This document shows, piece by piece, positions 7,801 through 64,000 of a stretch of 64,000 nt of DNA. A program made the translations under genes and the position numbers. The notes under the pieces are model-generated. The model was not told the DNA's origin. It saw only the letters and a list, made by a program, of their open reading frames with translations, and did no database searches. The stretch lies in contig JAHDYR010000053.1 in the NCBI GenBank assembly GCA_019828565.1, positions 222,214-286,213 of the forward strand. The letters are read 5' to 3'. The first letter of the stretch is position 1. Each line of letters opens with the position of its first letter. This DNA is from Carpediemonas membranifera BICM. Taxonomy: Eukaryota > Protista > Fornicata.

Positions 7801-9208
7801 CGACAGAAAGAAACGACGCGGGCGAAAGATGCAGCGGTCGCGCACCTCTTTCACCGAGACAAACGCCAGCCCCACCCATGGTAGGTCGAGAGAAAACTTC
7901 ACCGACACCAGTGTGGCAGGGCCCAGACAGCGGCTCGAGCCCGGCAGCCTCAAGGCACATAATCGGACACTCGGTCTCCCAGCCATCCTTAAACTGCCCA
8001 GTAAGCAGTCGGCCGCGACCACAAACACTGGGACCGGCACGCGAGACACTCAAGATTCGACCAAAGAGGGGGACACACTCAAGGGCTCTCACTTCCAATC
8101 GAGAGATAGTATCGGCCTGGATACAGATACGGTGACCGGCGAAACAGATTCACTCAGCTCTCACCACAGCATGCTGGACGAGTTTCCCGAGTCCGCACTG
8201 GCCATCGCCCTGGCTGCCACGGAGACAAGCGACCCGACCACTGGCTCAGCGCCTGACCTGCATGACGCGACTCTCTCAAACCTCTCACTCGCCATGGGGC
8301 GCCGTTCGGTCCAAATCCTGTACGCCATTCGCCAGACGCCCATTCTCTGCACGTGGCTCCTGTTATTCGTTCTCATCTTCGTCTCGATGAACCTTTACGC
8401 GCTTTACGAGACGAGCGATGTGTCCCAGTCGGTCCAGACCATCTTCATCGAGTACCGCTATCTTCTGACCCTCGCCCACATCCACCAGTGGATCGCCGGG
8501 TCAGCCTGGGGAGCAGGGGCGCCGTTGACAACAGATGAAGCCGCCCTTGGTGTCTGGAACGACTTGGCTGATTTGTCAGAAATGGTCACATTCCTCTCCG
8601 GTCAGAGTCACGAGTTGAGTCTCATCGACTCAGCATGGACTGCCGCACCGGCCTTTACTCGGTCAGTTGGGGCCCGTCTCTTGGACACCATGGCCCAGGA
8701 CCACTGGAGAGAGGGGTTGTACGCTGATGAAATCGCCGTCGTGCTGCATTCCACCAGCTGCCTCAGACTCGTAGAGTCGCAGTGCAGTTTAAGCCGGAGA
8801 TATGACGCGTCGAAGGGTCTGATGCCTGTTCTCGAGGCATATTTGATGTATGCTGAGAACGCGGCTGCCGAGCTTGAGGCTGGCATGATTGGCGGGCCTG
8901 GCCAACTTTTCGTGAATGACACGCTGCCGCTCGACGTTCTCGGCGGGGCCTTCCAGATCCAAGGAATCATGCGCACGAGGTTCACCGAGCAGGTCACCAA
9001 CACGCAGACGAACACGCTGAGCTTCCTGGTGGCGTTTGCGGTGCTGCTCGGGCTGTTCTACTACATCTATCTGTTCCGCGCCATCCGGCGACTGTCGAAG
9101 GTGCGGACGCAGTTCAGCCTCATCTTCCACTCGCTGCGGCGCAAGGAGATCCCGGCCGGGTTGCTGGCGAAGTTCCTGCTGCTGTTCCCCGAGGAGGACC
9201 TGGAATAG
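4850..9208 (+). CDS. Large polytopic membrane protein, TmcB/TmcC (tiny macrocyst)-like; paralog of 33454-37571
   Basis: Many N-terminal TM helices, a helical middle and further TM pairs; shared HPL.R.H.RV, FP.Q.E.ALR, RWP.S and C-terminal FPE motifs with the paralog; first ATG at 4850. Confidence 0.7.
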   Translation: MQTNYNETRTNISSSVRHSIPSHSAHNTEEQYTRAESVGGDSSVGGSSMHSKSVTSAASSAATSTVGVGRTEQFEQTMFQLIYLASGPQVFFMVLAVVLLFIDFAQMASFSLDPSLFTLSIFGVDLSFIQRTLTLVRVGSLAASLGTTALLAMGTTTLSFFVLFFLVCYFSARAIQQNAVPNMLLVRFIRVTLILFNTAGFIPVFSVLTALTLQYAGSFNFIDFTLFSIFGLASVSLTLVVGFTTLTSYPMTLTSRHPLARMHARVDMVYLISKAITVLLFQVDLPSRVMTGWMLGFLLLCTVLYTAFVPFYSMVTNTVRALSLYVLVCCASLGIHLLAATTFCALIPVVAFLPLFAYLVTAIPVSRFVGSWKANLRTVTRDKPLSASDQISLQPRRPILFPFQAEIALRSTVKAISRYEKRLIAIQKRVPSSLGEAEGMMNNDGTLNVQLLPHEWRDELDQLREAIRLEIDCGMRLFQVLLSRWPDSPFIRMAFINYVACYRTQTLTSVITNSMPRLELTKMLVIDVQYFIFICHRNPNSLQGDSSVMSRLEMQRNLSSVQKSQKLLTDQMHIFWSMVGRQRGVKLTLGKVNTFVGLVSRLESTMSMTEKLYSRVLKEPTPRLIRHYEQFVTLFSRPEMAAEYLNGLEGVADELEVVHMNSRGDIAQKKKITVQTFDFIRHKSSNLSLHLRAVVSVVAIATLFVISVLICIITLHLCRYVGWQIVITSGVALGANMISVGFSEIREGSPMALAAAVQCAGPMWKAVSDGMAESHIKAALSTYRQYTLPLLVAEDMSEIQDDPYRVISDVSVSVFEEGRDLITKTIQQQIYSIHSYLESEYVTVTTFSNGVPNGTTTKSVASFIPTVIYTAESIVSCIKNGGTIHSCTSELDDKLLSQEYSLVTSGLNAMFGVADRVFVVSQLFLLVQICVYVIIFTLFVLCFLFIFLVMYIIPVARSISFNAALISLFASLPPKMVNSIVCDFDRKKRRGRKMQRSRTSFTETNASPTHGRSRENFTDTSVAGPRQRLEPGSLKAHNRTLGLPAILKLPSKQSAATTNTGTGTRDTQDSTKEGDTLKGSHFQSRDSIGLDTDTVTGETDSLSSHHSMLDEFPESALAIALAATETSDPTTGSAPDLHDATLSNLSLAMGRRSVQILYAIRQTPILCTWLLLFVLIFVSMNLYALYETSDVSQSVQTIFIEYRYLLTLAHIHQWIAGSAWGAGAPLTTDEAALGVWNDLADLSEMVTFLSGQSHELSLIDSAWTAAPAFTRSVGARLLDTMAQDHWREGLYADEIAVVLHSTSCLRLVESQCSLSRRYDASKGLMPVLEAYLMYAENAAAELEAGMIGGPGQLFVNDTLPLDVLGGAFQIQGIMRTRFTEQVTNTQTNTLSFLVAFAVLLGLFYYIYLFRAIRRLSKVRTQFSLIFHSLRRKEIPAGLLAKFLLLFPEEDLE

Positions 9209-10171
9209 CTGCGGCAACTGTCACGATATTGAATCTTGCCTTAAATCTGATTTTAGGATTCGCCTCATCTTCAACGGCATCTTCAACCAGCACAATTCAT
9301 CTTAGGATGGACAAACCCATTCTGCCGCTGTCGATGAGCCAAGATGCGTTCACGTGGCTTCCGCCGCTTCCGGTGACGCCCGTTGCGGAGCAGAACATCG
9401 ATTTCCACACCGATTCGTTCGCGCCCGATGCAAGCTTCGATTTGGACCAAATTTCGTGCTTCAGCATCGCCTCAACGTGCCATTCGCCGTTCATGCGCGA
9501 CAGCCCCTTCGCCCGGTCGCTTGATTCATTCGCGAAGTCACCGACATCGGTCCGCGCAGATTCGGAAGTTCACTCCTACTTGTCTGACGAGTTTGTGACG
9601 TCCAGCTTCCAGGGCGACGCGGTCTCCTTCATCTCGCCGAAGACGCACCGGACGGCCGCGCCCAAGCGGCTCAACGAGAACCAGCAGGCCAACCAGAGGA
9701 GCTCGAGGCGCAGCTCCCTTAAAATCACGCACCACTACTCGCCGCGCACGATGCCGCGGCGGACGAGCGGGGAGGCTGACGTGAGGGTGCGCCTTCACAT
9801 GGACTCTCCAGCGGCATGCCGCAGTGTCATTAGACTTGATTGATTTCTCTTTATTGCTGGTCGCGGTACGCGGCTCTGTAAAGCTTAGCATTGTGCGGGC
9901 GCTTGATGTTGGTTACTGAAGCTGTTCGGGACGCGTTCCTGTGAATATGCGGAGAACGCATGCAAATAGGAACACTATGGAACGACGTCCCGCATTATTG
10001 CATAATGGGAGAAGCTGATACACGCGGTGGGCCGAAGCACGCGTGTAACCGACTCTATGTTCATGCCTTTGTTGACTAGCTTTTTTTTCACCAAAAAGTT
10101 TCTGCCGATTTTTTTTCATGCACAATCGTGAGGCCGGGACACCGGAGCGGGCTCGTCCAATTGTCGGCTAG
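8698..10171. repeat. Inverted segmental duplication A, copy 1 (partner 19326-20800)
   Basis: Near-identical reverse complement of 19326-20800; differences seen at 8716, a 1-nt indel near 9251 and at 10162. Confidence 0.95.
9307..9843 (+). CDS. Hypothetical Ser-rich protein (178 aa)
   Basis: ATG-started ORF intact in both copies of duplication A; no domain recognised. Confidence 0.5.
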   Translation: MDKPILPLSMSQDAFTWLPPLPVTPVAEQNIDFHTDSFAPDASFDLDQISCFSIASTCHSPFMRDSPFARSLDSFAKSPTSVRADSEVHSYLSDEFVTSSFQGDAVSFISPKTHRTAAPKRLNENQQANQRSSRRSSLKITHHYSPRTMPRRTSGEADVRVRLHMDSPAACRSVIRLD

Positions 10172-10256: not shown

Positions 10257-11033
10257 TCACCGCTTGAGATAAATCGGCTTCGTCTGGAGCCTCCCTCTGA
10301 CGCCCATCTCTCTCGTCCAAGCCATCCTCAGCTTCCCAAGCTCGGACGGCATCGTCGACGCGCTCTCCACTGGCTCCAGCTCAAACAAGAAGCGCTTCTT
10401 GTCATTAGGCAGGAGTATCCTGTCCACGTCAATGGAGTCTGGCTCCCTGGTGGTGGGGTGGTGATTCTTGAGCACACGATACTGTGGCCCGACGTCAATG
10501 GTCGGTGCCGAGAGGTAGATCGGAACACTGAGCTTTGAGTCGATTTGGACTTCGAGGAACGCATGCCCGTTTGCTACGTGAGACCTGGGCTTGACTTCGA
10601 GCGGGTTGGCGGACTGGACCTTGTAGGTGGAGGTCAACGTGTGGAGCCCCTCGGCGTTGCGGTACACAACGGTGGAAGTGAACGTGTGCTCTACGGGCTC
10701 GCCGATGTCCTTGTGGACGGCGTATTCAAGGCGCTGGCCAGGGGCGAGCTCGCGAATGGACTCGTTGAGCAGGCGCTGTCGGACAGAAGTTGTCATGAAG
10801 GCATCCAGCTCGATGTTGGTGAGAATCTCGGCAGACATGTTCACAAAGCAGATCGAAAAGCCAGCTTTCTCTCCCATATAGAGTGTATTTGGCCTGGGGG
10901 CAGGCTTTAAGACCATTTGTGTGTGCTGTGGGCACATATTGCCACCAACATTGAGCAAAAGGGAGCGAGTATCGATAGCGTCCACTGACATGGATGGAAT
11001 ATAGTTCACCTTGAGGACAGTTTGGCTGTCCAT
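10257..11033 (-). CDS. TRAPPC13: Trafficking protein particle complex subunit 13-like (short form)
   Basis: LYMGEK.GFSIC, NPLEVK and LGKLRMAWTREMGVRGRLQT motifs. Confidence 0.75.
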   Translation of the reverse strand: MDSQTVLKVNYIPSMSVDAIDTRSLLLNVGGNMCPQHTQMVLKPAPRPNTLYMGEKAGFSICFVNMSAEILTNIELDAFMTTSVRQRLLNESIRELAPGQRLEYAVHKDIGEPVEHTFTSTVVYRNAEGLHTLTSTYKVQSANPLEVKPRSHVANGHAFLEVQIDSKLSVPIYLSAPTIDVGPQYRVLKNHHPTTREPDSIDVDRILLPNDKKRFLFELEPVESASTMPSELGKLRMAWTREMGVRGRLQTKPIYLKR

Positions 11034-11154
11034 GATGTGCGGCGTCAGCGTGGTGCAGTCTAGAGCGCGGTTCAGAAAGCTCGCCAGGAGATGGATACAG
11101 CGAAGATGCCACCCGGGGGCAACTTATTCGACACATCTACTTGTATTATCCTTT

Positions 11155-11184
11155 TGAAGTATCATAGAGTGCACAGTGCAAGCA
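11155..11184 (+). repeat. 30-bp direct repeat at the 3' (ORF-downstream) end of Fanzor element 1
   Basis: Exact match to 13560-13589. Confidence 0.95.
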
Positions 11185-11280
11185 CTGCGTCTCTCCACTT
11201 CAATTAGCTTGCCCGGAGGCGAAGACTAGCGGCTGGTTAGCCGTAATTGGTGTATTGGGGTTATAGTTGGGAAGACGGGC
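11170..11280 (-). ncRNA. Putative Fanzor omegaRNA scaffold overlapping the ORF 3' end (element 1); ends uncertain
   Basis: Minus-strand hairpins CGGCT-AACC-AGCCG (11230-11243), CTT(C)GCC-TCCG-GGCAAG (11208-11224) and CAGTG-CTTG-CACTG (about 11174-11187); the first two covary with element 2. Confidence 0.6.
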
Positions 11281-13175
11281 TGGATTTCTGAAAGCACTGG
11301 CTTGATACTGTGCATCCGTCATGAGGCCGCAATCCAAGATGTTCTGTGCAGCAGTCTTGTCTATGTGGGAGAGATTGAGCCAAGTGGATGTAGTAGGATC
11401 GGAATTGAGGCGTTGCTGTGTGTACCATGGAGCACCTTGTCAATTCGGGTTGTGGCATCGCATCGTGCGCCTCGTGTAACGAGTTCTACGGAACCTCGCG
11501 CGGCAGAAGGGGCAGACGAGTGAGGTTCGGAACTCGTTAGTCATCCGCACTTCAGCAGTGATGTTGAAAGCTCTCATGATGTGTGGTAGTAAGGTAGCAA
11601 AGCGACCATACGGCGCGCATGGATGCACCCGACGGGGCGTCTTGAATCTAGCGCTTCCGTAGAAGACAACCAGCCTGGTGGGGGCTGCCCGGGGAGGGGC
11701 AATACCGCGAGGGAGTCGCCGAGGAGTCCATCCTAGGGTGCGAGCAAGCTGCTCCCCAGCTCTGTGGAAGTGCTTTTGACGCAAGATGTGGTTCGTCAGG
11801 CGCACTCTGCGGAAGCTCTTGACCATCCCAGCGTCGAATATTTCCTGCTCGTGGAGGAGCACAAACCTAACCGAGTTTTGTAGACTATCTAGATTTGTAC
11901 TTTTGAATGACGCAGGAGTCATATCGAACGCGAAGCTGGGGGTCTTGGTGTACCCACACTTCGGGACCACACCGGAGCTGGTGGTGCCATCTGGGTGGCG
12001 GATGAAGAATCCACCCAGAGCCCGAGCACCCGGGTCGAAACCCATGACCTGGGCATCGGGGTCTGGCGCGGGGCGAGCATGCGTCATCCACACCCAGACG
12101 CTCCCGAGCCTTTCGCTTCATCGTCGGGTTGCCACTGGCACGTCTGCTGACGTATGGCAGAGCACCAACTTGGACCGTGAGGTCCACGGCGACCCCATCT
12201 GTCTTGACAGACAGCACCCGACGGATGTTCGGAGGAAGAGCCTCCAGCTGCTCTCGCGTCATGCGCTCAGTGGCGTGATGCTCCGGGTCGACCCCAAGTT
12301 GGGCAAGCCAAGCCGGGTTCAGCACGTTGAGAGAACAGGGAACGTGCATGAACCCGGGGCGGACCGGAGCCATCGGAACAAGCTTGGGGCCAGCCAGCGG
12401 CTTGTCACCCGGAAGAGGTGGATGGGCGGGGTTGAATGCCGCAACCATATCCGTGAGCTCTCCCGGAGCCGCGGAGATCCGCCAGACGCAGGGCAGCGTG
12501 AGTAGAACGCCCTCGTCGACTCGTCCCGGAGTTGAGATCTTTGCAAGGTGCTCATCAACGATCGCCTTGACAGCGCGTTGTTCGGTGCGCAACCGGGTGA
12601 TGTCGTCCCGGGGCACGTCTGGATCACGCTGAGTCAGGGCAGTGTCGACCCGAGTGATGATCTTCGCCAAGCGCCAGCAGTAACCTTCAAGGGCATTGAC
12701 GAGCCACAGCTTGGTGCTCGTAGCATATTCGCCCAGCCACACGTCGAACTCGCGAGGGCACTGTTGACGAGCTGCCCTGAGGGCGGTGCAGAGGCGGATG
12801 ATGAATTCGTCATGCCACAGTGGCATCTCGGCTATTGAGGTGACAACCTGCCGAACTGCGGTGTATTTTTTCGCGCCCAGGAAGCGGTCGACGAGTGAGT
12901 CGGTGGCGAGGTTTCGGTACTCTCCACTTCGCCGGTAGGCGACGATAACGATGGCCTGGTGCAGAGCCTGGTCATGCACGGGCAAGGAGAGATTGGCGTG
13001 GTGGCAACACGCGGCGATGTATGACAGAAGGCAAGTATGAAAGTACTTGGCCTTCGTGAACGAGCAGAGCCTGTTCTCCAATCCCGGCGTAGAAGTCCGC
13101 GATGAAAGGAATCACGTTTCTACGGTTATGGAGAATGGAGGATATGGAGAACTTGACCGTATAGATGCTGGTCAT
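11200..13175 (-). pseudogene. Fanzor1-family RNA-guided endonuclease (about 650 aa reconstructed), disrupted
   Basis: VKTDGVAV motif, RuvC-I VMGFDPG, VVFYG followed by rearranged RuvC-II NEFRTS, Zn finger CPFC...CHNPN*, RuvC-III HIDKTAAQNIL read in frame past TGA 11440-11442; frameshifts near 13080 and 12080. Confidence 0.85.
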
Positions 13176-13559
13176 GTGAAGCTCTGCGTTTTGCGGTGAA
13201 TGAACCGATCACTTGTTAACAACACACATCAAAGACGACAGACGTTTAATGAACGAGACTATGTAGTGATAATGGCGAGAATTAGAAGAACTGAAGTGTT
13301 TTATCTTCAGGCAGCGGCATAGAAGAGCCCGCTGTGCGATGGAAGGTGCCATGGTGATGATTGCAAGGACGTCATGATCAAGACCCCGAAATCCGACAAG
13401 CAGAAGAGAGCGGATGGAAGTAAGATGGGGTAGACGATAGGTGGGAAGCTAGTTGCTTGGCGAGAGGACTGGAGAAGCACTGATTGATGACCCCCGACGA
13501 TGATGACTGACTATCGAAATATCACTCAAGAAGAAGGAAGGGAGAGCGGGAAGGGGTAA

Positions 13560-13589
13560 TGAAGTATCATAGAGTGCACAGTGCAAGCA
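13560..13589 (+). repeat. 30-bp direct repeat at the 5' (ORF-upstream) end of Fanzor element 1
   Basis: Exact match to 11155-11184. Confidence 0.95.
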
Positions 13590-13671
13590 GTAAAGTAAGA
13601 CTCTTGTTGTATCGAGACCTCACCTTTCGATGGTGCATTTTTAGGATCCGTCTTTCGAAGTCGAGGAATAC

Positions 13672-14562
13672 ATGTCCAACCAGGTGTTTGTGGGCTCTAT
13701 TCCGCCAGGTGTCGATTATATGGAGATCAAGCGGGTGATGTCACGCGTTGGGGACGTTGCTTATGTGAAAATCATGAAGGACGAGCGTGGTGTATCAAGA
13801 AACTTCGGCTTTTGCGAGTTCCGCGATCACCGCTCTGTAGAAGCTGCCCTCAACCCAGCTGAAGTCTTCGAGGTTGAAAACCAGCGGCTAACGATCTCTA
13901 CTGCCGAGCGCCGTGGCGAGCGCGACAACCGCGATCGGCCATACGGCGGCCGGCGCGATGATAGACGCGACGACGGATACAATGACAGGTATGATCGTGA
14001 TAGACATGACCGCGGACCCCGTTACGACCGCGACGACCGCGACTATCGCCGCGACGGCAGGATGGATCGCCAGGACGACCGCGGTCCACCCCCTAGCTAC
14101 GATAGAGACGTACCTATGGGCAGACGCGACGACCGTGACGACGACTTTGTGGTAGGCGTCCCTGGCACGCCCTTCAGAAGCCCGGCACCTCCTCAGGACG
14201 ATGGCATCCCCCCCGGCGTTCGAGAGATTGTGAACAACCTCTCCAGCCAAGAGCGGTACGATGTTCTCGTCTCCCTGAAGGCCATGCGGCTGCAGCACGA
14301 AGAGGACTTCCGGACGCTGATGAACACGAGCCCGGTACTCGCATACGCCATCATCTCGATCAAACAGGAGCTCGAGCGCGAAACTCAGCAGAATGGGCAG
14401 GAGGAGCCGCGGCCGGACCAGCGTGCTGGAGGGCTCAGTGAGGAGGAGCAGCGCCGTCTAATCGAGGAGGCGCTCAACATGACTGAGGCTCAGTTTAATC
14501 AGCACAGCGACGCCGATAAGCGCGAGATCATGGAGATCAGGCGTAGGTATGGGCGGAGGTGA
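13672..14562 (+). CDS. CSTF2: Cleavage stimulation factor 64-kDa subunit / Rna15-like RRM protein
   Basis: N-terminal RRM (VFVGSIP, RNFGFCEF), hinge-like LMNTSPVLAYAI and C-terminal LNMTEAQFNQ..REIMEIR. Confidence 0.75.
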   Translation: MSNQVFVGSIPPGVDYMEIKRVMSRVGDVAYVKIMKDERGVSRNFGFCEFRDHRSVEAALNPAEVFEVENQRLTISTAERRGERDNRDRPYGGRRDDRRDDGYNDRYDRDRHDRGPRYDRDDRDYRRDGRMDRQDDRGPPPSYDRDVPMGRRDDRDDDFVVGVPGTPFRSPAPPQDDGIPPGVREIVNNLSSQERYDVLVSLKAMRLQHEEDFRTLMNTSPVLAYAIISIKQELERETQQNGQEEPRPDQRAGGLSEEEQRRLIEEALNMTEAQFNQHSDADKREIMEIRRRYGRR

Positions 14563-14655
14563 GTCGCCAGTCGTTTGTTTGTACGTAAAGCGCGTGATGA
14601 CCTGACATGTTGCACGATGCCATCGTTTGATAAGACAATCACCCAGCCGAGTTAT

Positions 14656-14835
14656 GAACCGAGGATGAGGGATATAGGGCAGTATCGCGCAATATTGACC
14701 AAGCTGCGGCACAATGTGTTGCGCAGTATAAACACATTGTTGGACCCTTCAATAGCACAAACATGGCCGCTTAACCTGCGTTTCGTTGACACAATGTGTT
14801 GCCCAGTATAAACATTGTTCGAACCTCCAGACAGG
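14656..14835 (+). repeat. Cluster of three related hairpin units downstream of Fanzor 2
   Basis: ACAATGTGTT-GCGCAGTATA-AACACATTGT (14711-14740, perfect 10-bp stem), a second copy at 14791-14818 and a diverged copy at 14656-14700. Confidence 0.85.
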
Positions 14836-14844
14836 GCCTGAAAG

Positions 14845-14945
14845 GAACGATCAAAGTGCCAAACTGCACAACATCATCCGTCCGTAGACGAATGTTGGCG
14901 GTTAGCCAATTGATGATACTGGAATGATGTTTGAAGACGTGGGAT
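14845..14945 (-). ncRNA. Putative Fanzor omegaRNA scaffold overlapping the ORF 3' end (element 2); ends uncertain
   Basis: Minus-strand hairpins TTGGC-TAACC-GCCAA (14895-14909) and TTCGTC-TACG-GACGGA (14877-14892), in the same order as in element 1. Confidence 0.6.
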
Positions 14946-16819
14946 CGATGTGCGACTGAACGGAGAGCCACTGAGCTCATCTTCTGAGGCAAGAGAACGC
15001 CACAGGATGTTCTCTGCAGCACTCTTGTCCCGATGATCAACATTCAGAGCATCAGGAACTGTTGCGCGCCACTGAGCACCACGGCACTGTGGATTTTCGC
15101 AGAGCATCACACGATGTGGGTGAACGTGCTGGTCATCACGCGGACGAACTCGCTTGTAGGGGGCGTGGCAGTGAGGGCAGACGACGGTGGTGCGATCCTC
15201 GTTAACCATGTTAAGATCGACGACAATGTTATACCTCTTGAGAAGGGGTACTATCTCTCTCGCGAACTTTCGATATGGCGCGCAAGGAATGAACATACCA
15301 GCAGGCGTGGTGAATCCCGAGCTCCCGTAGAAGACTTTCAGGCGAATGTGGGTGGCGATGGGATGGTGGCGACGCCAACCGAACTCCCGAGCCAACTGTT
15401 GGCCGCAGCGGGCGAAGTGCTTCTGGCGAAGGATGTGGTTCGCAAAGCGCACTCGGCGGAAAGACTTACGCATTCCAGCCTCGAAAATGTCGTTCGCGTT
15501 GTCCAGCACAAACCTAATAGAGTTGTTGATACTCACTAGTCTTGTGCTCTTGAACGACGCGGCCGTCATATCAAAGCCGAAACTTGGCGTCTTAGTGTAT
15601 CCGCACTTTGGAAGGACGCCGGAGCTGGTGGTGCCATCGGGGTGCCTGATGTAATACCCTCCGATGGACCTCGCGCCCGGGTCGAACCCCATGAGGTGGG
15701 CATCAGGATCCGGCGCGGGCGGAGCATCGGCATTATTGGTCCCGAGTCGCGGGCGCTCTCTTTCTCCCGCCATTTCGCTCGCTTTCGAACAGGCATGCTC
15801 GCATCATGTTGTGGCCGATAGTGGCCGAAGCCTCTCCTAATCGTCACCGCCACACAGACCCCATCGGTGCTCAGGCTGAGCAGACGGCCCATTGACCTGG
15901 GGTTGTCCCGGTAGCGTCTTTTCTGCTCTTCTGTCAACGGTTTGGTGGCGTGTGGGAGTGCGTGATTAATTCCCACACGATGACAGAAATTATCATTCAG
16001 TAGGCCCATCGTGTCACCGTAGGCCATGAAGCCCGGTCGGACGGGGGCCATGGGCACGATCGGCACGAGGCGAGGCTGGCGGAGCGACATCGAGTACTCC
16101 CCGTTGAAGTGGCTGATGAGGCCACTCAACGTCTCCACTCCGTCAGCAATTGCCCAGACGCAAGAGAGAATGCGTGGGGCAGCCTGGGAGACTGGGAGCC
16201 CGTCGTTCTCACCCATGTGAGTCGCCCAGAACAGCGAGGGGAGACACGCAAGGATCTCAGGGTTGACCATGTTGAGGATGGCGTGAACGCCGGCCAACTC
16301 CTGCTCGAAGAAGGCCGGAGAGCCAACACCTGCGAGAGCTTCTTCGAGTCGGGCGAGGGTGCCCTGTAGCCTGTCACGGTACGTCGTCACCGTGCGGGCG
16401 AGCCACAGCTTCACAGAGTTGGCGTATCGGATGAACCACTTCCGGAGACTGGGACTCACTCCATGCGACTCCGCACGACCTTCGAGCTGCGCGACCAGAT
16501 CCTGCGTGGTAGTCTCCCGCCACATCGGCAGAGTGTCGAGCGACTGCACGATGGCCGCGTAGGCCTGACCCGGATGACCGCCGCGTAGATGAGTGAGCAG
16601 TCCTTTGTGGAAGTCGGCGTCATGTAGGGGGAGTTGCCGGCGCTGCGCATAGCATTCAACCGCGAGCCGGGCCAGCAGGCATGAGTAGAGATATTTTGCT
16701 GCGGCGTAATCCCCCACTCTCCGTTCTTCGGTGTAGTTCTGTCTGAAAGCTTGCTTGATGGAGGCTTTGATCGTATATATCTCCATCTTGTTGCGCACTA
16801 CAGGTGTGCAGCTGGTCAT
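14874..16819 (-). pseudogene. Fanzor1-family RNA-guided endonuclease (about 640 aa), split by one frameshift near 15750-15775
   Basis: LSTDGVCV, RuvC-I LMGFDPG, KVFYG, NEDRTT, CPHC...CENPQC and RuvC-III HRDKSAAENIL all intact; N-terminal half homologous to element 1 (IYT.K.SI, AKY...CLL, VPMAPVRPGFM). Confidence 0.85.
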
Positions 16820-17014
16820 TGATGAAGATGACATATAAGAGCCGACGATGAACACCATTACCATCATATACAAGTGTAGAAGTGAATTTAATGTGGAATA
16901 GAAGACAATGAGACGACGTGTGAGCGATTGTGATGTTTGCAGCTGTACTGACGTCCACGAAGAAGACGCTTTGTGGAAGCCCTGGAGGACGATCTCCCTA
17001 CCGACTTAAGACGT

Positions 17015-17082
17015 GAGTAGGAGGGAGACAGGGCAGTGTTGCCCAGTATAAACACATTGTTTGACCCTTCAATAGCACACAA
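17015..17082 (+). repeat. Repeat at the 5' end of Fanzor element 2
   Basis: 66/68 identical to 42354-42421; weaker similarity appears to extend left to about 16935. Confidence 0.9.
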
Positions 17083-17133
17083 TGAAAATCCTTATCCTGC
17101 ACGGTCGAAAAAGCCGAGAGGCGAAATAACAGG

Positions 17134-17907
17134 ATGCAGCACATAGGCCAGCCATTCTCCCTCACAACAAAGGCAAGCGTCAGATACTTCGGCATTTTGA
17201 CGGCTATGAATCAGGAAGAGAACACATTCACGCTCGCTAATGTTCAGTGTTTCGGAACCGAGGGCCGTGTGCCACCTGCGAACGCGGTTCCTCCTTCTAC
17301 GGCCCCAATTGTTAGCAAAACTTTCAGTGCTGATGAGGTTGTGAACATCCAGCTCCAGCAGATGCCCCCGTACTTCGGCTACCCACAGGGCTATCCCCAG
17401 CAGCCCTCCTACGAGCAACAGCGCGCCCCGGCACCCGCTCCGGCCCCTGCTCCGGCCCCTGCTCCCGCCCCTGCTCCCGTCCCAGCTGCGATGCCCGCTC
17501 CCTCAATGACTGGTGCCCCCGCCCCCGCCCCTGTAACGATGAACGCCGCTATGGTGCAGAAGGAGAGGCCTGTGCGTGAGAAGCAGGCAGGCGCTACCAC
17601 TACTCAGCGCGAGAAGAACCCTGCTGGCGTTTACCGCCAGCCAAGGCCTGCTGCCCGCAATGAAATGAGTGTTGATGAGATTAAGAACTCGAAATTCGAC
17701 TTTGAGACTTCGGCAACAAAATTCAACAAGGATGCGATCTTTGAAGAGTTCGACGAGGGCGACAAGGCCGTGAAGAGCATCTTCTCGCAGTCTTCCTTCT
17801 TCGACGACATAGAGGAGCCCGAACACCGCCCGCCCCGCCAGAACAGGGGCAGAGGCCGGGGCCGTGGCCGTGGTCGCCCCTGGAAGCCCCGCGAGGAGGC
17901 GCTCTAG
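17134..17907 (+). CDS. LSM14: Lsm14/Scd6/RAP55 family protein
   Basis: N-terminal Lsm fold (VRYFGIL, LANVQCFGTEGR), FDF and FFD boxes, RG-rich tail, (AP)n linker. Confidence 0.9.
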   Translation: MQHIGQPFSLTTKASVRYFGILTAMNQEENTFTLANVQCFGTEGRVPPANAVPPSTAPIVSKTFSADEVVNIQLQQMPPYFGYPQGYPQQPSYEQQRAPAPAPAPAPAPAPAPAPVPAAMPAPSMTGAPAPAPVTMNAAMVQKERPVREKQAGATTTQREKNPAGVYRQPRPAARNEMSVDEIKNSKFDFETSATKFNKDAIFEEFDEGDKAVKSIFSQSSFFDDIEEPEHRPPRQNRGRGRGRGRGRPWKPREEAL

Positions 17908-18844: not shown

Positions 18845-19653
18845 ACGTGTTGATGATGACGAGTGTTGCATTTAGATCGCTAAAATACTCAATAAGTCCG
18901 CTCCTTGCGACTGAGACTGTTGGTACCTTACCAAGCGCGATGTTTGATGCAGTTTTGATGTTGTTAGATAATTGACCTGTCAGACAGCCTCCTGTGCATG
19001 GAAAATGATTCCACGATCTTCAAATGGCAATGGCGGGCCTTGCAGCCACTACTCCGAGGAGTACCACGCCAAAAGCTTCACGCTCAGCACAAGAGGGGCA
19101 TATCGATCATCCAGGTTGGATTGGTTACCAAGATATACACGTAAAGAAACGAAGAAGTTGCTATAGTAGCGATCCCGTTCGAGTATAGTCTTGTTGATAA
19201 TTGATAGTCTTAGCCTGCGCGACTCGACGACTGTGGTTAAAATGGCTTAAACTCAAAACTCGTTTGAAAAAGAAACAAGGAATTCACACAGATAGCAAAT
19301 ATTGACTGCTGTATGGCAATATGGCCTAGCCGACCATTGGACGAGCCCGCTCCGGTGTCCCGGCCTCACGATTGTGCATGAAAAAAAATCGGCAGAAACT
19401 TTTTGGTGAAAAAAAAGCTAGTCAACAAAGGCATGAACATAGAGTCGGTTACACGCGTGCTTCGGCCCACCGCGTGTATCAGCTTCTCCCATTATGCAAT
19501 AATGCGGGACGTCGTTCCATAGTGTTCCTATTTGCATGCGTTCTCCGCATATTCACAGGAACGCGTCCCGAACAGCTTCAGTAACCAACATCAAGCGCCC
19601 GCACAATGCTAAGCTTTACAGAGCCGCGTACCGCGACCAGCAATAAAGAGAAA

Positions 19654-20190
19654 TCAATCAAGTCTAATGACACTGCGGCATGCCGCTGGAGAGTCCATGT
19701 GAAGGCGCACCCTCACGTCAGCCTCCCCGCTCGTCCGCCGCGGCATCGTGCGCGGCGAGTAGTGGTGCGTGATTTTAAGGGAGCTGCGCCTCGAGCTCCT
19801 CTGGTTGGCCTGCTGGTTCTCGTTGAGCCGCTTGGGCGCGGCCGTCCGGTGCGTCTTCGGCGAGATGAAGGAGACCGCGTCGCCCTGGAAGCTGGACGTC
19901 ACAAACTCGTCAGACAAGTAGGAGTGAACTTCCGAATCTGCGCGGACCGATGTCGGTGACTTCGCGAATGAATCAAGCGACCGGGCGAAGGGGCTGTCGC
20001 GCATGAACGGCGAATGGCACGTTGAGGCGATGCTGAAGCACGAAATTTGGTCCAAATCGAAGCTTGCATCGGGCGCGAACGAATCGGTGTGGAAATCGAT
20101 GTTCTGCTCCGCAACGGGCGTCACCGGAAGCGGCGGAAGCCACGTGAACGCATCTTGGCTCATCGACAGCGGCAGAATGGGTTTGTCCAT
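19654..20190 (-). CDS. Duplicate of the hypothetical Ser-rich protein at 9307-9843
   Basis: Identical translation. Confidence 0.5.
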   Translation of the reverse strand: MDKPILPLSMSQDAFTWLPPLPVTPVAEQNIDFHTDSFAPDASFDLDQISCFSIASTCHSPFMRDSPFARSLDSFAKSPTSVRADSEVHSYLSDEFVTSSFQGDAVSFISPKTHRTAAPKRLNENQQANQRSSRRSSLKITHHYSPRTMPRRTSGEADVRVRLHMDSPAACRSVIRLD

Positions 20191-20289
20191 CCTAAGATGA
20201 ATTGTGCTGGTTGAAGATGCCGTTGAAGATGAGGCGAATCCTAAAAATCAGATTTAAGGCAAGATTCAATATCGTGACAGTTGCCGCAG

Positions 20290-20800
20290 CTATTCCAGGT
20301 CCTCCTCGGGGAACAGCAGCAGGAACTTCGCCAGCAACCCGGCCGGGATCTCCTTGCGCCGCAGCGAGTGGAAGATGAGGCTGAACTGCGTCCGCACCTT
20401 CGACAGTCGCCGGATGGCGCGGAACAGATAGATGTAGTAGAACAGCCCGAGCAGCACCGCAAACGCCACCAGGAAGCTCAGCGTGTTCGTCTGCGTGTTG
20501 GTGACCTGCTCGGTGAACCTCGTGCGCATGATTCCTTGGATCTGGAAGGCCCCGCCGAGAACGTCGAGCGGCAGCGTGTCATTCACGAAAAGTTGGCCAG
20601 GCCCGCCAATCATGCCAGCCTCAAGCTCGGCAGCCGCGTTCTCAGCATACATCAAATATGCCTCGAGAACAGGCATCAGACCCTTCGACGCGTCATATCT
20701 CCGGCTTAAACTGCACTGCGACTCTACGAGTCTGAGGCAGCTGGTGGAATGCAGCACGACGGCGATTTCATCAGCGTACAATCCCTCTCTCCAGTGGTCC
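20290..20800 (-). pseudogene. Orphan 3' fragment of the Tmc-like membrane protein gene
   Basis: Copy of roughly the last 170 codons of 4850-9208, with the 5' part missing. Confidence 0.8.
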
Positions 20801-20943: not shown

Positions 20944-21420
20944 ATGACGATTTTCCGATCGACGCTCATCGCCGTTACCGACATGGAACGCTCGAAGCAA
21001 TTCTACAAAGACGTGCTTGATGCTGAAATCATCGCTGATTTTGGCGCAAACGTTACACTCACAGGAAACATCAGCCTCCAGACGATCGAAACATGGGCTG
21101 GTTTCATACAGCAGCCAGATACCTCATACATTAACTTTGGCAACGCTAGCGAGCTCTACTACGAAGAAGACGACATCGAAAGTTTTGTCCAGCGTCTCGA
21201 GGCCTTCGAAGTCGACCTTGTTCATCCCCTATATGTGCACGAGTGGGGCCAGCGTGCGGTACGCTTCTACGACCCCGACGGTCACATCATCGAGGTGGCC
21301 GAGGGTCTAAATGCCGTCGTCGCCCGCTTCCTGGACTCGGGCATGACTCTCGCCGAGACGGCCCGCCGGATGGGGCTGTCGGAAGACTTCATACGAACCA
21401 ACGTGATGGGCGAGGAGTAG
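20944..21420 (+). CDS. Glyoxalase/bleomycin-resistance (VOC) family protein, bacterial type
   Basis: IAVTDMERSKQFY, ELYYEEDD, HEWGQRAVRFYDPDGHIIEV. Confidence 0.9.
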   Translation: MTIFRSTLIAVTDMERSKQFYKDVLDAEIIADFGANVTLTGNISLQTIETWAGFIQQPDTSYINFGNASELYYEEDDIESFVQRLEAFEVDLVHPLYVHEWGQRAVRFYDPDGHIIEVAEGLNAVVARFLDSGMTLAETARRMGLSEDFIRTNVMGEE

Positions 21421-42283: not shown

Positions 42284-42421
42284 CAGTGTTGCGCAGTTGA
42301 GCACTGGAAGATTTTGTGATGGGAGCGAATGTCACACGCCCGACCTTCGAACCGAGTAGGAGGGAGACAGGGCAGTGTTGCGCAGTATAAACACATTGTT
42401 CGACCCTTCAATAGCACACAA
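42284..42421 (+). repeat. Solo copy of the Fanzor-2 terminal repeat (possible non-autonomous element)
   Basis: 42354-42421 is 66/68 identical to 17015-17082; a second core CAGTGTTGCGCAGT lies at 42284. Confidence 0.8.
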
Positions 42422-51162: not shown

Positions 51163-53720
51163 CTATTCGACGGTCGTGGCCGCGACGAGGCGGTCGTGGC
51201 TGCCCTTGTCGAGCTGGAGCTTCTCGGCGTCCGACGCCACGGACCGGAGGACAGCCATGCACTGGTTGCTAACGACGTACCGCCCGACGGTCTCGGGCAT
51301 CTTGTCGGAGACCTGCATGACGCGGCTGAACTCCTCGCTGGCCGCGGCGACGGCGGTATTGGCCTTGACGAGCTCGCTGCGGCGCTTGGCCTTCAGGTCG
51401 TCAAGGTCGGCGCCCAGCTGGCGCTCTTCTGCCATCTTGACGTCGAGCTGGGCGGAGATCGATGAGAGTTGCTGGTTATTGAACTTCGCAGCCTCCCGCA
51501 TGCTGCGGTTCTCCTTCGTCAGCCTGCTCTGCGTCGCCTCCAGCGCGTCCACGTCCGCGCGCAGGCTCTGCCGGAGCTCCTCCGTCTGGGCGCTGTGTCC
51601 GCCCCTGTTCTTCGCCTTGGCCGCGGCGTTCGCGGACTTGAAGGCCTCCACCATCTTCTCGTACTTTGTCACCTCCGCACGACGCGCCTCGATCTTCTCG
51701 TGGAGCGCCGAGCCCTCCTCCCTCGAGGCGCTGCTTCTCGAGGGCTGCGCGGCCGATGATGGTGGTCTGATCGAGCGGCTTGCCGTCCTCGTCAACGCCC
51801 ATCTTGGACTGGCGCACCTCGAGCTTCTTCCTGAGGTTTGCGTTGACGAGCTGCTGGCGGTTGACCTCGTTGGTGATGCGCGAGTGCTCCTCGCGCAGCG
51901 TCCTCACGTTGCTTTCGGTCTCGTCGACGAGCATCTTGACGTTCATCAGCTGCTCGGCCCGGGTCAGCTCGGTCTGCGCGAGCTTGTTCTCCCAGTAGAA
52001 GGACTTGTTGAGCGCCACGCTGACGAGCTCGGTCTTCTTCGCCACCTCCACGCGCATCTGGTCGACGCGCACGCGCTCATCGTTGCGCAGCGTCTGCATC
52101 TTCAGCTTCTCCTGCTCGCACGTGCTCGTCACGAGCTCCAGCTCGCTGCGGTGCGTGCTGGCCTCGTCCAGGCGGGCTCTGAGCATGTCGAGCTCCTTCC
52201 GGTCGGCAGCCTGCGTCCGCGCCTGGCTGGTCTCCTGCTGCTGGAGGAGCTTGAACTCCGCCTTCCGCTCGGCGAGCGACGCCTCGAGGCTCGCGATCTT
52301 GTCGTTGAGTGCGGTCTTCTCCTCCGCGGTGCGGTGGCCCTGCGCGCGCTCGAGCCGGCGCTGAAGCTTCTGGACCTCGAAGTTCACGGAGTACAGCTTG
52401 CGGACGAGCTTCTGCTGCTCGGCGTCCTTGTCGCGGACGGACGACGTCAGGTTCCGCAGCATGCTCTGCGCGCCGCTGATGTCGGTGTTGAGCGAGCGCT
52501 CCTCGCTAATCTTGGCGTCGCGCAGGTCACGCTGCTTCATGCGCTGCTCGTCGAGCGCCCGCTGCTCGGCCTTCGCGGCGGCCTGGAGCTCGACCGTCTC
52601 GTCGTAGCGCTTCTTGATCTCGGCCTGGCGCTCGGCGACGCTCCTCTCCTTCGTCACCAGCGTATTGGCGGCCAGCTTGATGGCCTCGATCTCCTTCTGG
52701 ACGCCGTCGCGCTTGGCGCTCGCGGCCAGCGTCTCCTGGTTGGTCTTGGCCGTCTGGGTCTGCCACGTGCGGCCCTCCTTCTCGCCGGCCCCGATGCCGC
52801 TGCGCACGAGGGCGTTCTGGCGCTGCCGCTCCTCGCGGGCGCGCTCGTCCTCGATACGACTCTGGCGGACGGTCTCGAGCGTCCCGAGAGACACAGTCTC
52901 CTGGTGCGTGACCTCCTTCTCGGCCAGGCGGTTGAGGCGGAGCGCCTCCTCGTCCTCGTTCATGCGGATGCGCAGCGCGTCGTCAAGCTGCGTCTCCTCC
53001 TCGGTCTCGGCCCGCTCCTCCTCGATGTCTGCGTCCTTCCTCGCCATGGTCTGGGCGAGGTCCTCGAGCTCGGCGTGGCGGCGGATGACGGCCTGCCGCT
53101 CCTCGCTGAACTCCTCGGCGAGCCTGTTCACGATCGTCTGCTTCGTGCGCGTCAAGCTGACGTCCGTCGCAAGGCCCTCGCGAAGTGCCTCCTTCTCGCG
53201 GTCGTTATGGTCGATCTTCGTCTGCAGCTCCTTCAGCTTGGCCTCGTCCGTCTTCATGTACGACATCTGCGCGGCGGCGTCGTCGCTCTTCTGCTTGATG
53301 ACGAGCGACCACTGCTCATACGCCTCCTGGCTTAGCCCAAGCTGCTCCGTCTGCGTCGCGATCTTCGCCTGTATCCCACGCAAGCTGTTCTGGTGCTCAT
53401 TGAGCTGCTGAATGCTCTGCTCGGTCTTGGCCTCGACCTTCACGATCTCCTTCTGCTCGGCCTCGGTCTCGGCGGACAGCACGCCAACGGTCTCCTCTAT
53501 GCGGGCGATCTCGGCGTCAGTTTCCATCTGTAGCTTGTTGCAGTTCTGGAGCTCCTGCTCGACGCTCTTCGTGTGGCTCTTGAGCGCCCGGGTGCGCTCG
53601 TTCTCCGAATCCAGCTTCAGCGCAGCTTCTTCGGCTTCGTCCTGGAGTTTGTCGATCTGTGTGATAGAGTGGTGTGCTACGAACTAGTTGTTTGTATTCC
53701 AGGATGCGCTGCAGGTCCAT
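51163..53720 (-). CDS. CCDC39: Axonemal ruler protein CCDC39/FAP59; intron 53657-53684, apparent frameshift near 51720
   Basis: YEQW....QKSDD....Y...DE.KLKEL and LYSVNFEVQKLQRRLERAQG...EEK.AL..KI motifs; C-terminal part continues in ORF 51163-51795. Confidence 0.8.
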
Positions 53721-53856
53721 CGTGAATTTTCGATGTTTGACATAAACTGCACATCGCAAATGTCGAGAACCCGGCAGCGTCTGGTTTGGGACGGTGACGG
53801 GGCGCGTGCTGCGGGTGGGTGGGAGTAGAATGACCCCCAGTGGCCTGGTGTGATCG
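52105..53856. repeat. Inverted segmental duplication B, copy 1 (partner 62249 to the window end)
   Basis: Reverse complement of 62249-64000. Confidence 0.95.
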
Positions 53857-62248: not shown

Positions 62249-64000
62249 CGATCACACCAGGCCACTGGGGGTCATTCTACTCCCACCCACCCGCAGCACG
62301 CGCCCCGTCACCGTCCCAAACCAGACGCTGCCGGGTTCTCGACATTTGCGATGTGCAGTTTATGTCAAACATCGAAAATTCACGATGGACCTGCAGCGCA
62401 TCCTGGAATACAAACAACTAGTTCGTAGCACACCACTCTATCACACAGATCGACAAACTCCAGGACGAAGCCGAAGAAGCTGCGCTGAAGCTGGATTCGG
62501 AGAACGAGCGCACCCGGGCGCTCAAGAGCCACACGAAGAGCGTCGAGCAGGAGCTCCAGAACTGCAACAAGCTACAGATGGAAACTGACGCCGAGATCGC
62601 CCGCATAGAGGAGACCGTTGGCGTGCTGTCCGCCGAGACCGAGGCCGAGCAGAAGGAGATCGTGAAGGTCGAGGCCAAGACCGAGCAGAGCATTCAGCAG
62701 CTCAATGAGCACCAGAACAGCTTGCGTGGGATACAGGCGAAGATCGCGACGCAGACGGAGCAGCTTGGGCTAAGCCAGGAGGCGTATGAGCAGTGGTCGC
62801 TCGTCATCAAGCAGAAGAGCGACGACGCCGCCGCGCAGATGTCGTACATGAAGACGGACGAGGCCAAGCTGAAGGAGCTGCAGACGAAGATCGACCATAA
62901 CGACCGCGAGAAGGAGGCACTTCGCGAGGGCCTTGCGACGGACGTCAGCTTGACGCGCACGAAGCAGACGATCGTGAACAGGCTCGCCGAGGAGTTCAGC
63001 GAGGAGCGGCAGGCCGTCATCCGCCGCCACGCCGAGCTCGAGGACCTCGCCCAGACCATGGCGAGGAAGGACGCAGACATCGAGGAGGAGCGGGCCGAGA
63101 CCGAGGAGGAGACGCAGCTTGACGACGCGCTGCGCATCCGCATGAACGAGGACGAGGAGGCGCTCCGCCTCAACCGCCTGGCCGAGAAGGAGGTCACGCA
63201 CCAGGAGACTGTGTCTCTCGGGACGCTCGAGACCGTCCGCCAGAGTCGTATCGAGGACGAGCGCGCCCGCGAGGAGCGGCAGCGCCAGAACGCCCTCGTG
63301 CGCAGCGGCATCGGGGCCGGCGAGAAGGAGGGCCGCACGTGGCAGACCCAGACGGCCAAGACCAACCAGGAGACGCTGGCCGCGAGCGCCAAGCGCGACG
63401 GCGTCCAGAAGGAGATCGAGGCCATCAAGCTGGCCGCCAATACGCTGGTGACGAAGGAGAGGAGCGTCGCCGAGCGCCAGGCCGAGATCAAGAAGCGCTA
63501 CGACGAGACGGTCGAGCTCCAGGCCGCCGCGAAGGCCGAGCAGCGGGCGCTCGACGAGCAGCGCATGAAGCAGCGTGACCTGCGCGACGCCAAGATTAGC
63601 GAGGAGCGCTCGCTCAACACCGACATCAGCGGCGCGCAGAGCATGCTGCGGAACCTGACGTCGTCCGTCCGCGACAAGGACGCCGAGCAGCAGAAGCTCG
63701 TCCGCAAGCTGTACTCCGTGAACTTCGAGGTCCAGAAGCTTCAGCGCCGGCTCGAGCGCGCGCAGGGCCACCGCACCGCGGAGGAGAAGACCGCACTCAA
63801 CGACAAGATCGCGAGCCTCGAGGCGTCGCTCGCCGAGCGGAAGGCGGAGTTCAAGCTCCTCCAGCAGCAGGAGACCAGCCAGGCGCGGACGCAGGCTGCC
63901 GACCGGAAGGAGCTCGACATGCTCAGAGCCCGCCTGGACGAGGCCAGCACGCACCGCAGCGAGCTGGAGCTCGTGACGAGCACGTGCGAGCAGGAGAAGC
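62249..64000. repeat. Inverted segmental duplication B, copy 2 (runs off the window end)
   Basis: Reverse complement of 52105-53856. Confidence 0.95.
62385..64000 (+). CDS. CCDC39: Second copy of CCDC39 (partial); intron 62421-62448
   Basis: MDLQRILEYKQL, GTTCGT...ATCACACAG, then IDKLQDEAE, open to the window end. Confidence 0.85.

Follow-up and report, generated by a model that had tools for sequence, protein, structure and literature searches.

Known carriers of Fanzor1, a class of RNA-guided nucleases, are DNA transposons. A gypsy element lying beside SpuFz1 has been interpreted as a later insertion, and a 2026 review states that no retrotransposon is known to encode a Fanzor (PMC13565253); none of the papers searched names both Fanzor and Carpediemonas. 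Here we describe two loci, element 1 and element 2, in a 64,000-nt window of the Carpediemonas membranifera BICM genome (contig JAHDYR010000053.1, positions 222,214 to 286,213, forward strand; all positions below count from the start of this window). The genome contains three related families (A, B and C) in high copy number; element 1 is a copy from A and element 2 a copy from B. Both are best read as decayed, non-autonomous elements in which a Fanzor1 gene lies backwards within ends derived from the micro-long terminal repeats (micro-LTRs) of resident Ty3/gypsy elements. The novelty lies in the carrier of this Fanzor1, which is undescribed and derived from gypsy, and in its insertion at places set by a motif.

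Like SpuFz1, SWv-1 and CMe-1A (PMC3627910, PMC10432273, PMC10530073, PMC10711439), the proteins of these elements combine the Fanzor1 RuvC layout with a C4 zinc finger, a TDG motif and a length of ~640–660 aa, and the 3' end of the elements is likewise predicted to be structured and to close with a long stem. They differ in that the carrier is not of the Mariner, Helitron, hAT, Sola, MuDR, IS4 or Crypton type, and in that A, B and C elements lack a constant target-site duplication (TSD) or adjacent motif able to serve as a target-adjacent motif (TAM). The unclassified Fanzor1 elements MCi-2, MCi-5 and HAgv-1 are alike in having a Fanzor as sole or main gene and an uncertain mobility enzyme, but their TSDs are of 4, 6 or 11–12 bp, their terminal inverted repeats (TIRs) are 13 bp or absent, and no LTR-like repeats or purine tract are described for them (PMC3627910).

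Two groups of retrotransposons offer further comparisons. Terminal-repeat retrotransposons in miniature and large retrotransposon derivatives (TRIM/LARD) have short terminal direct repeats, a purine tract, TG...CA termini, a 5-bp TSD, no gag-pol and solo units. The A, B and C elements resemble them in all of these features, and differ in carrying an antisense nuclease gene and a predicted guide-RNA scaffold. Their terminal units are identical over only 25–31 nt and no canonical primer-binding site is evident, so they cannot be counted as members of TRIM/LARD, although they behave as dependants of gypsy. Yeast Ty3 makes a 5-bp duplication whose place is set by the host factor TFIIIB (10.1101/2021.07.27.453949). 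As with Ty3 and Tf1, the 5-bp TSD of the elements described here stands at a narrow fixed distance from what would be a host-factor site, with polarity; unlike that of Ty3, the target is an 11-bp motif near the starts of protein-coding genes and not a tRNA gene.

Fanzor1-type genes and their predicted guide RNA

Two homologous loci about 1.7 kb apart on the minus strand had been reported in an earlier note on this DNA, and both were found with their named motifs where it placed them. In elements 1 and 2 respectively, the minus strand reads TDGV at 12202 and 15868, the RuvC-I motif GFDPG at 12042 and 15689, VFYG with a Gly at the canonical RuvC-II position at 11667 and 15335, NEFRTS at 11538 and NEDRTT at 15203 (with CxxC in both), and the RuvC-III motif H.DK.AA.NIL at 11367 and 15035. 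The open reading frames (ORFs), themselves 1.7 kb apart, run from start to stop over ~657 and ~638 codons. That of element 1 is frameshifted near 13085 and near 12080–12095, has a stop codon at 11440–11442 where the fourth Cys of the zinc finger is expected, and reads Ile instead of Arg in RuvC-III; that of element 2 has a single frameshift near 15750–15800, between the TDG and DPG motifs.

Published criteria for a Fanzor are a DPG motif, Gly or Pro at the canonical RuvC-II site, an alternative Glu, a C4 finger and an RD pair (PMC10711439, PMC10530073, PMC3627910), with the alternative Glu ~45 residues past the canonical site and six residues ahead of the zinc finger. We compared these with 12 aligned proteins from families A, B and C, families whose proteins are 45–55% alike. 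GFDPG, which contains the DPG of PMC10711439, is invariant across the 12 proteins and three families; G442 occupies the canonical RuvC-II site, and the alternative E484 follows 42 residues on and stands six residues ahead of the zinc finger, whose first Cys is at 491. The full pattern D-X(125-275)-[TS][TS]xx-C4 finger-X(5-50)-RD is present as D323, T487, four Cys and R540-D541. Judged by their sequence, both genes are real Fanzor1-type genes, and both are broken. Fanzor1 is favored over Fanzor2 by the length, by a match to Wsv486 (see below) and by the TDG motif, which is also present in one Fanzor1 of the PMC3627910 supplement.

Searches of 5.8 and 1.8 billion proteins identified no relatives outside the C. 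membranifera genome: the named matches were all C. membranifera proteins, and 28 more look like the same families. The earlier suggestions of an undescribed Fanzor lineage and of a probable metamonad host are borne out by the lack of detectable relatives outside this genome and by the identity of the protein matches. No homologs were found in the viral contigs searched. A sequence search of the PDB returned at best Cas12f, at an E value of 0.65, and an NCBIfam search returned no match. The nearest neighbors in a language-model comparison (0.97–0.98) are giant-virus clusters of 600–735 aa with Cas12f1-like_TNB or DUF8286. AlphaFold models were poor, with a predicted local distance difference test (pLDDT) score of 38 from the 12-row alignment and 34 for a single domain, and a PDB structure search with the former gave no match and is uninformative. 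Against a viral set, Foldseek returned from a poor model a sole significant match, Wsv486 (E 2.8e-5, template-modeling (TM) score 0.14). Wsv486 is probably the SWv-1 Fanzor1, since the virus has one Fanzor1 family and a Cyanidioschyzon repeat related to WSV486 fits the description of CMe-1A (PMC3627910).

Within families, the ratio of nonsynonymous to synonymous polymorphism (pN/pS) is 0.5–1.1, which suggests that copies spread under little selection on the protein. Two Fanzor copies of these families (P0013 and P0028) are annotated in public records as 'cytosine deaminase' and 'chromosome partition protein Smc', probably in error.

The last 100–150 nt of A, B and C elements are predicted to share one fold plan with different letters, with a long stem that runs to the last base. 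This predicted three-hairpin plan resembles the stem 1/stem 2 scaffold of SpuFz1, and we take it as a putative omega-RNA scaffold. The z-scores of the predicted folds are −2.7 (B), −0.8 (A) and −1.3 (C), of which only that of B is significant alone. In reads examined as assembled contigs, depth peaks at the 3' ends, which we do not take as evidence for expression.

Element ends, duplications and target motif

The C-terminal piece of element 2 has at least 134 matches in the genome, at ~95% and ~55% identity; element 1 has 67 DNA matches, and the repeat core of family B occurs 256 times. Family C is known from the flanks of other copies and from protein matches. With ends set from the genome copies, family B runs from window position 17079 to 14797 and family A from 13622 to 11155. 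The termini are TG...CA in all three families, with 6-bp inverted ends in most family-A copies, and the inverted termini measure 3–6 bp only. Among 38 left/right pairs, 23 show a perfect 5-bp duplication and 5 a duplication with one mismatch (chance ~1e-55); on the plus strand it reads CCTTT at element 1 and CAATG at element 2. A lack of TIRs and of a TSD is not supported, given these short inverted termini and 5-bp duplications. The lack of a transposase was rightly noted, as none lies inside element 1 or element 2. TIRs of at least 10 bp with a superfamily TSD, or the hairpin ends of a Helitron, as in Mariner, hAT, MuDR, Sola and Helitron carriers, were not found at the ends of these elements. 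Constant 5-bp duplications and TG...CA termini at more than 100 unrelated sites require an integrase or a transposase.

Direct repeats had been described as bounding both elements. Repeats of 30 and 44 nt do exist, but they are internal or solo and do not bound the elements: in every element a second copy of the last 25–31 nt lies a short way in from the opposite end. Element 1 extends 33 nt beyond its repeat, to 13622, and the internal repeat of element 2 is only ~25 nt long, the 44-nt match at 14716–14759 falling outside the element. Identity along the full length of the two end units, as in LTRs, was not found. The repeats are identical within each family and unalignable between families. 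Each of the three families has a purine tract immediately before the end unit (for C, in copy L039). The 63-bp end unit of element 1 has ~8 solo-type matches elsewhere in the genome, which lack the purine tract.

The two repeats of element 2 carry a substitution that is found exactly twice in the genome, against 256 repeat-core matches, and this private mutation common to both repeats points to copying from end to end; by rough estimate, the chance of such a shared variant is ~1%. Within the 25-nt repeat, a variant at position 23 that recurs among copies is one-sided in several of them and so bounds the copied stretch.

B copies have the motif YGCAGKWTAWG at −22 to −12 from their left end. When a motif matrix trained on B flanks is applied to 16 A flanks, its best match falls at exactly −22 in 14 of them, on the opposite strand; in right flanks it has no fixed position. 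Among genes in the window, the motif stands upstream of 6 of 29, where 0.9 would be expected, in what is a small sample. Each family's own repeat also contains a copy of it, which explains the position of family C 10 nt behind the motif that lies in the end of A. The targets of A are unlike A's repeat, with C in 1/15 and 0/15 at two diagnostic positions, which suggests that the motif is read by a protein and not by guide pairing; a guide match was rejected on this ground. We also rejected a splice signal, as no AG follows the motif, and a tRNA-gene signal, as no tRNA gene lies within the window. The bases adjoining the 5-bp duplication are random in the copy flanks, so there is no conventional adjacent TAM.

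Several further features of individual copies were observed. At 14712–14796, a third occurrence of the five duplicated letters adjoins the solo unit at 14717–14759, which brings 30 nt with a target motif. This unit lacks the private variant of element 2; it has the look of an insertion made at the guide-side junction of element 2 with another B copy as template. A third family-B fragment, at 42286–42418, consists of an end unit and a purine tract followed inward by a little unique sequence, and lies 11 nt from a target motif and 52 nt ahead of a host ORF. In the left ends of family A (L031–L060), variability is much higher in the outer 35 nt than elsewhere; these nucleotides form a small hairpin whose loop differs in length between copies, with at least two types. 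In six copies (L040, L041, L045, L051, L015/L018 and L028), non-TG left-end bases equal the target bases past the duplication, giving an apparent 6–8-bp in-register duplication. L015 and L018 are inverted B copies (C65:305–332 kb), and the left duplication letters of L015 recur at the right end of L018, which suggests inversion by recombination between copies. A/B and A/C chimeras also occur (L014/L043, at C10:275.3–277.8 kb; L036; protein P0012), and L036, whose left end is from A and whose right end is from C, preserves a 5-bp duplication. Run X6, filed under another organism, contains pieces of both families, most of them at 95–99% identity and low depth, which could reflect contamination, a mixed culture or a close relative.

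Resident Ty3/gypsy elements and a probable route of insertion

The genome yields at least 150 integrase matches, in the order reverse transcriptase, RNase H, integrase. Two resident gypsy elements have 50–53-bp LTRs after a purine tract, with the target motif ~10 nt from the LTR start. One gypsy family with a 1516-codon gag-pol frame has the motif 13–14 nt downstream of 4 of 6 3' LTRs, and one copy of the motif, at C14:144.7 kb, is flanked by a solo A unit at a distance of 11 nt and, on its other side, by a gypsy element of this family at 13 nt. The LTRs of this family are identical, unlike the end units of the Fanzor elements, and the resident gypsy LTRs examined likewise lack a TGG-type primer site. 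Ty3/gypsy elements (L069, L070 and at G000 C1:902–911 kb) have 50–77-bp LTRs with no TGG-type primer site at the two junctions examined, and some are nested or in tandem arrays. A chromodomain gypsy family (L061–L068) was rejected as helper because it does not target the motif. The outer 17-mer of family B occurs on contigs C1–C18 in nine same-strand pairs spaced 4551–4555 bp apart, with more beyond; none of the nine has the exact B repeat core, and the C14 coordinates imply a 92-bp LTR and a 5-bp duplication. Examples lie at C3:174197–178750, C13:705343–709898 and C14:153916–158560. This recent 4.55-kb LTR-like paired repeat, which ends in the 17-mer and is known from coordinates alone, is the likely helper of family B. 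No integrase match lies between two B repeat cores among the matches listed.

From these data, a Ty3/gypsy-dependent mechanism is the probable means by which families A, B and C have spread, the elements being passengers of gypsy integrase and probably also of its reverse transcriptase. The earlier idea of an undescribed mobility mode survives in this form, the evidence pointing to Ty3/gypsy machinery acting in trans and not to the direct repeats. Gypsy integrase would likely insert the element in trans, tethered by a host protein bound to the motif, as TFIIIB does with Ty3. We are less sure of the preceding steps, in which an antisense RNA intermediate may be copied by the helper's reverse transcriptase. 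A plus strand primed at the purine tract would copy the repeat (corresponding to U3/R of an LTR) from one end to the other, and strong-stop DNA of the helper would supply the outer end (U5), or else this would be retained from the element's own RNA, which would account for end units that are alike over part of their length. Transcription from the opposite strand would yield the Fanzor mRNA and the omega-RNA, with three hairpins at the far end and a guide from the flank. The nuclease would not be needed for insertion; our best guess is that its likeliest past role was homing into insertion-free alleles, and that it is now mostly a decaying passenger.

Canonical LTR replication yields identical LTRs (PMC6894440) and does not fit the partial match of the end units. 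Intermolecular transfer of the first strand can join the U5 of one RNA to the U3 of another (PMC6894440), and a primer-less passenger that took the helper's U5 each time, followed by a second jump at R, would give the observed anatomy. It is possible, although we hold it only tentatively, that these are the first truly retrotransposing Fanzors, moving by a non-canonical parasitic route: without a primer site of their own, they would take the helper's minus-strand strong-stop DNA (U5) in each cycle and copy only U3/R across their ends, so that the other end could act as omega-RNA for an RNA-guided nuclease that remains active.

A number of observations weigh against a gypsy-dependent mechanism. 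The end units differ past their first 25–31 nt in every copy, and in A and B the sequence after the far-end unit has no primer-binding site of the TGG type. The shared variant of element 2 is a single case set against ~7 other private repeat changes that are one-sided, and could be due to gene conversion. Families A and B approach the motif from opposite sides. No gag-pol match falls inside the 4.55-kb repeat among the matches listed (17 and 53 scored), and the search for a DDE transposase covered rve only. Comparison of genome copies and their flanks, which the earlier note had expected to define both ends and empty sites, gave the true ends; in reads examined as assembled contigs of uncertain type, it gave no empty allele and no joint that skips a whole element.

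A rival reading is movement at the DNA level, which we regard as unlikely. Here gypsy-LTR-derived ends would be acted on by a Ginger/IS481-like DDE transposase, or by gypsy integrase working on DNA copies; the repeat would be a binding or promoter site kept by gene conversion, and the Fanzor would restore excised donor sites. Stably different ends are what DNA transposons with distinct left and right ends have, internally deleted subfamilies have amplified, and a nuclease has been argued to make evolutionary sense only in excising elements (PMC13565253). Such a route does not account for a purine tract that abuts the end unit in three families, for a private variant in both repeats of element 2 or for a target motif also used by an autonomous gypsy element, and the random sequence by the duplication offers no insertion-site TAM for restorative homing.

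It is far less probable that the Fanzor ribonucleoprotein itself picks the target, with the motif as TAM or seed for a constant repeat-derived guide and an integrase inserting alongside, in the manner of a CRISPR-associated transposon (CAST). The copy of the motif in each family's repeat and the fixed spacing and polarity would suit this proposal, but one motif matrix serves A and B despite their different repeats and proteins, A's targets do not resemble its repeat, a gypsy family with no Fanzor uses the same motif, and copies with broken ORFs amplify near neutrally. Least credible of all is a stand-alone Fanzor element that moves by direct-repeat recombination or nuclease-driven homing with no integrase: solo units such as that at 14717–14759 and the absence of a mobility gene inside the elements speak for it, yet repeat recombination accounts only for loss products, and the TSDs largely refute it.

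Genomic neighborhood and implications

The neighbors are ordinary host genes. The TRAPPC13-like and CSTF2-like genes are divergent, and element 1 occupies the promoter region that separates them, and the target motif of element 2 lies ahead of the next host gene (Table 1). A perfect 1.47-kb inverted duplication (8698–10171 and 19326–20800) encloses both elements, and a second lies at 52105–53856 and 62249–64000; either recent rearrangement or faulty assembly could account for them. A 158-aa ORF on the plus strand at 20944–21420 may encode a bacterial glyoxalase-type protein with a C-terminal helix-turn-helix.

Table 1 Features of the two elements and their surroundings (window positions).
Feature	Position	Strand	Remarks
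Element 1, family A, full-length, non-autonomous	11155..13622	-	Ends set from genome copies, which stop at 11155 and start in the 13622 register
Broken Fanzor1-type ORF, element 1	11200..13175	-	Two frameshifts, one zinc-finger nonsense codon, RuvC-III Arg changed
Far-end unit, element 1	11155..11202	+	48 bp with inverted ends of 6 bp; its first 30 nt match 13560-13589 exactly
Predicted omega-RNA scaffold, element 1	11155..11250	-	Two short hairpins and a terminal stem to the element end; overlaps ORF tail
Polypurine tract, element 1	13528..13559	+	Directly ahead of end unit; from sequence
Micro-LTR-like end unit, element 1	13560..13622	+	63 bp: 30-bp repeat and variable outer end
TSD, element 1	11150..11154 and 13623..13627	.	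5 bp; sequence and copy comparison
Target motif (YGCAGKWTAWG class), element 1	13634..13644	+	11 nt from element end
Element 2, family B, full-length, non-autonomous	14797..17079	-	Both ends common to most of 30 genome copies
Broken Fanzor1-type ORF, element 2	14874..16786	-	One frameshift; catalytic D-E-D and four Cys present
Predicted omega-RNA scaffold, element 2	14797..14915	-	Two short hairpins and an 82-nt terminal stem to the element end
Polypurine tract, element 2	17015..17036	+	Directly ahead of end unit; from sequence
Micro-LTR-like end unit, element 2	17037..17079	+	43 bp: 25-bp repeat, shared with 14797-14819, and outer end
TSD, element 2	14792..14796 and 17080..17084	.	5 bp; copy comparison
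Target motif, element 2	17091..17101	-	11 nt from element end, 43 nt ahead of next host ATG
Solo family-B end unit outside element 2	14717..14759	+	Own target motif 14770-14780 (-); flanks form no duplication
Host gene, TRAPPC13-like	10257..11033	-	Pfam TRAPPC13_M/N
Host gene, CSTF2-like	13672..14562	+	RRM and hinge
Host gene, LSM14/Scd6-like	17134..17907	+	Domain search

Three diverged families that keep the catalytic pattern intact on a gypsy-type carrier raise the question of what a Fanzor does with neither an empty donor site nor a TAM at the insertion point. Their half-identical ends may reveal an undescribed way in which an element exploits reverse transcription by its helper. Also of interest are a eukaryotic integrase whose insertion is precisely targeted to a DNA motif that can be read from sequence, and a Fanzor lineage that has no sequence-detectable relatives elsewhere.

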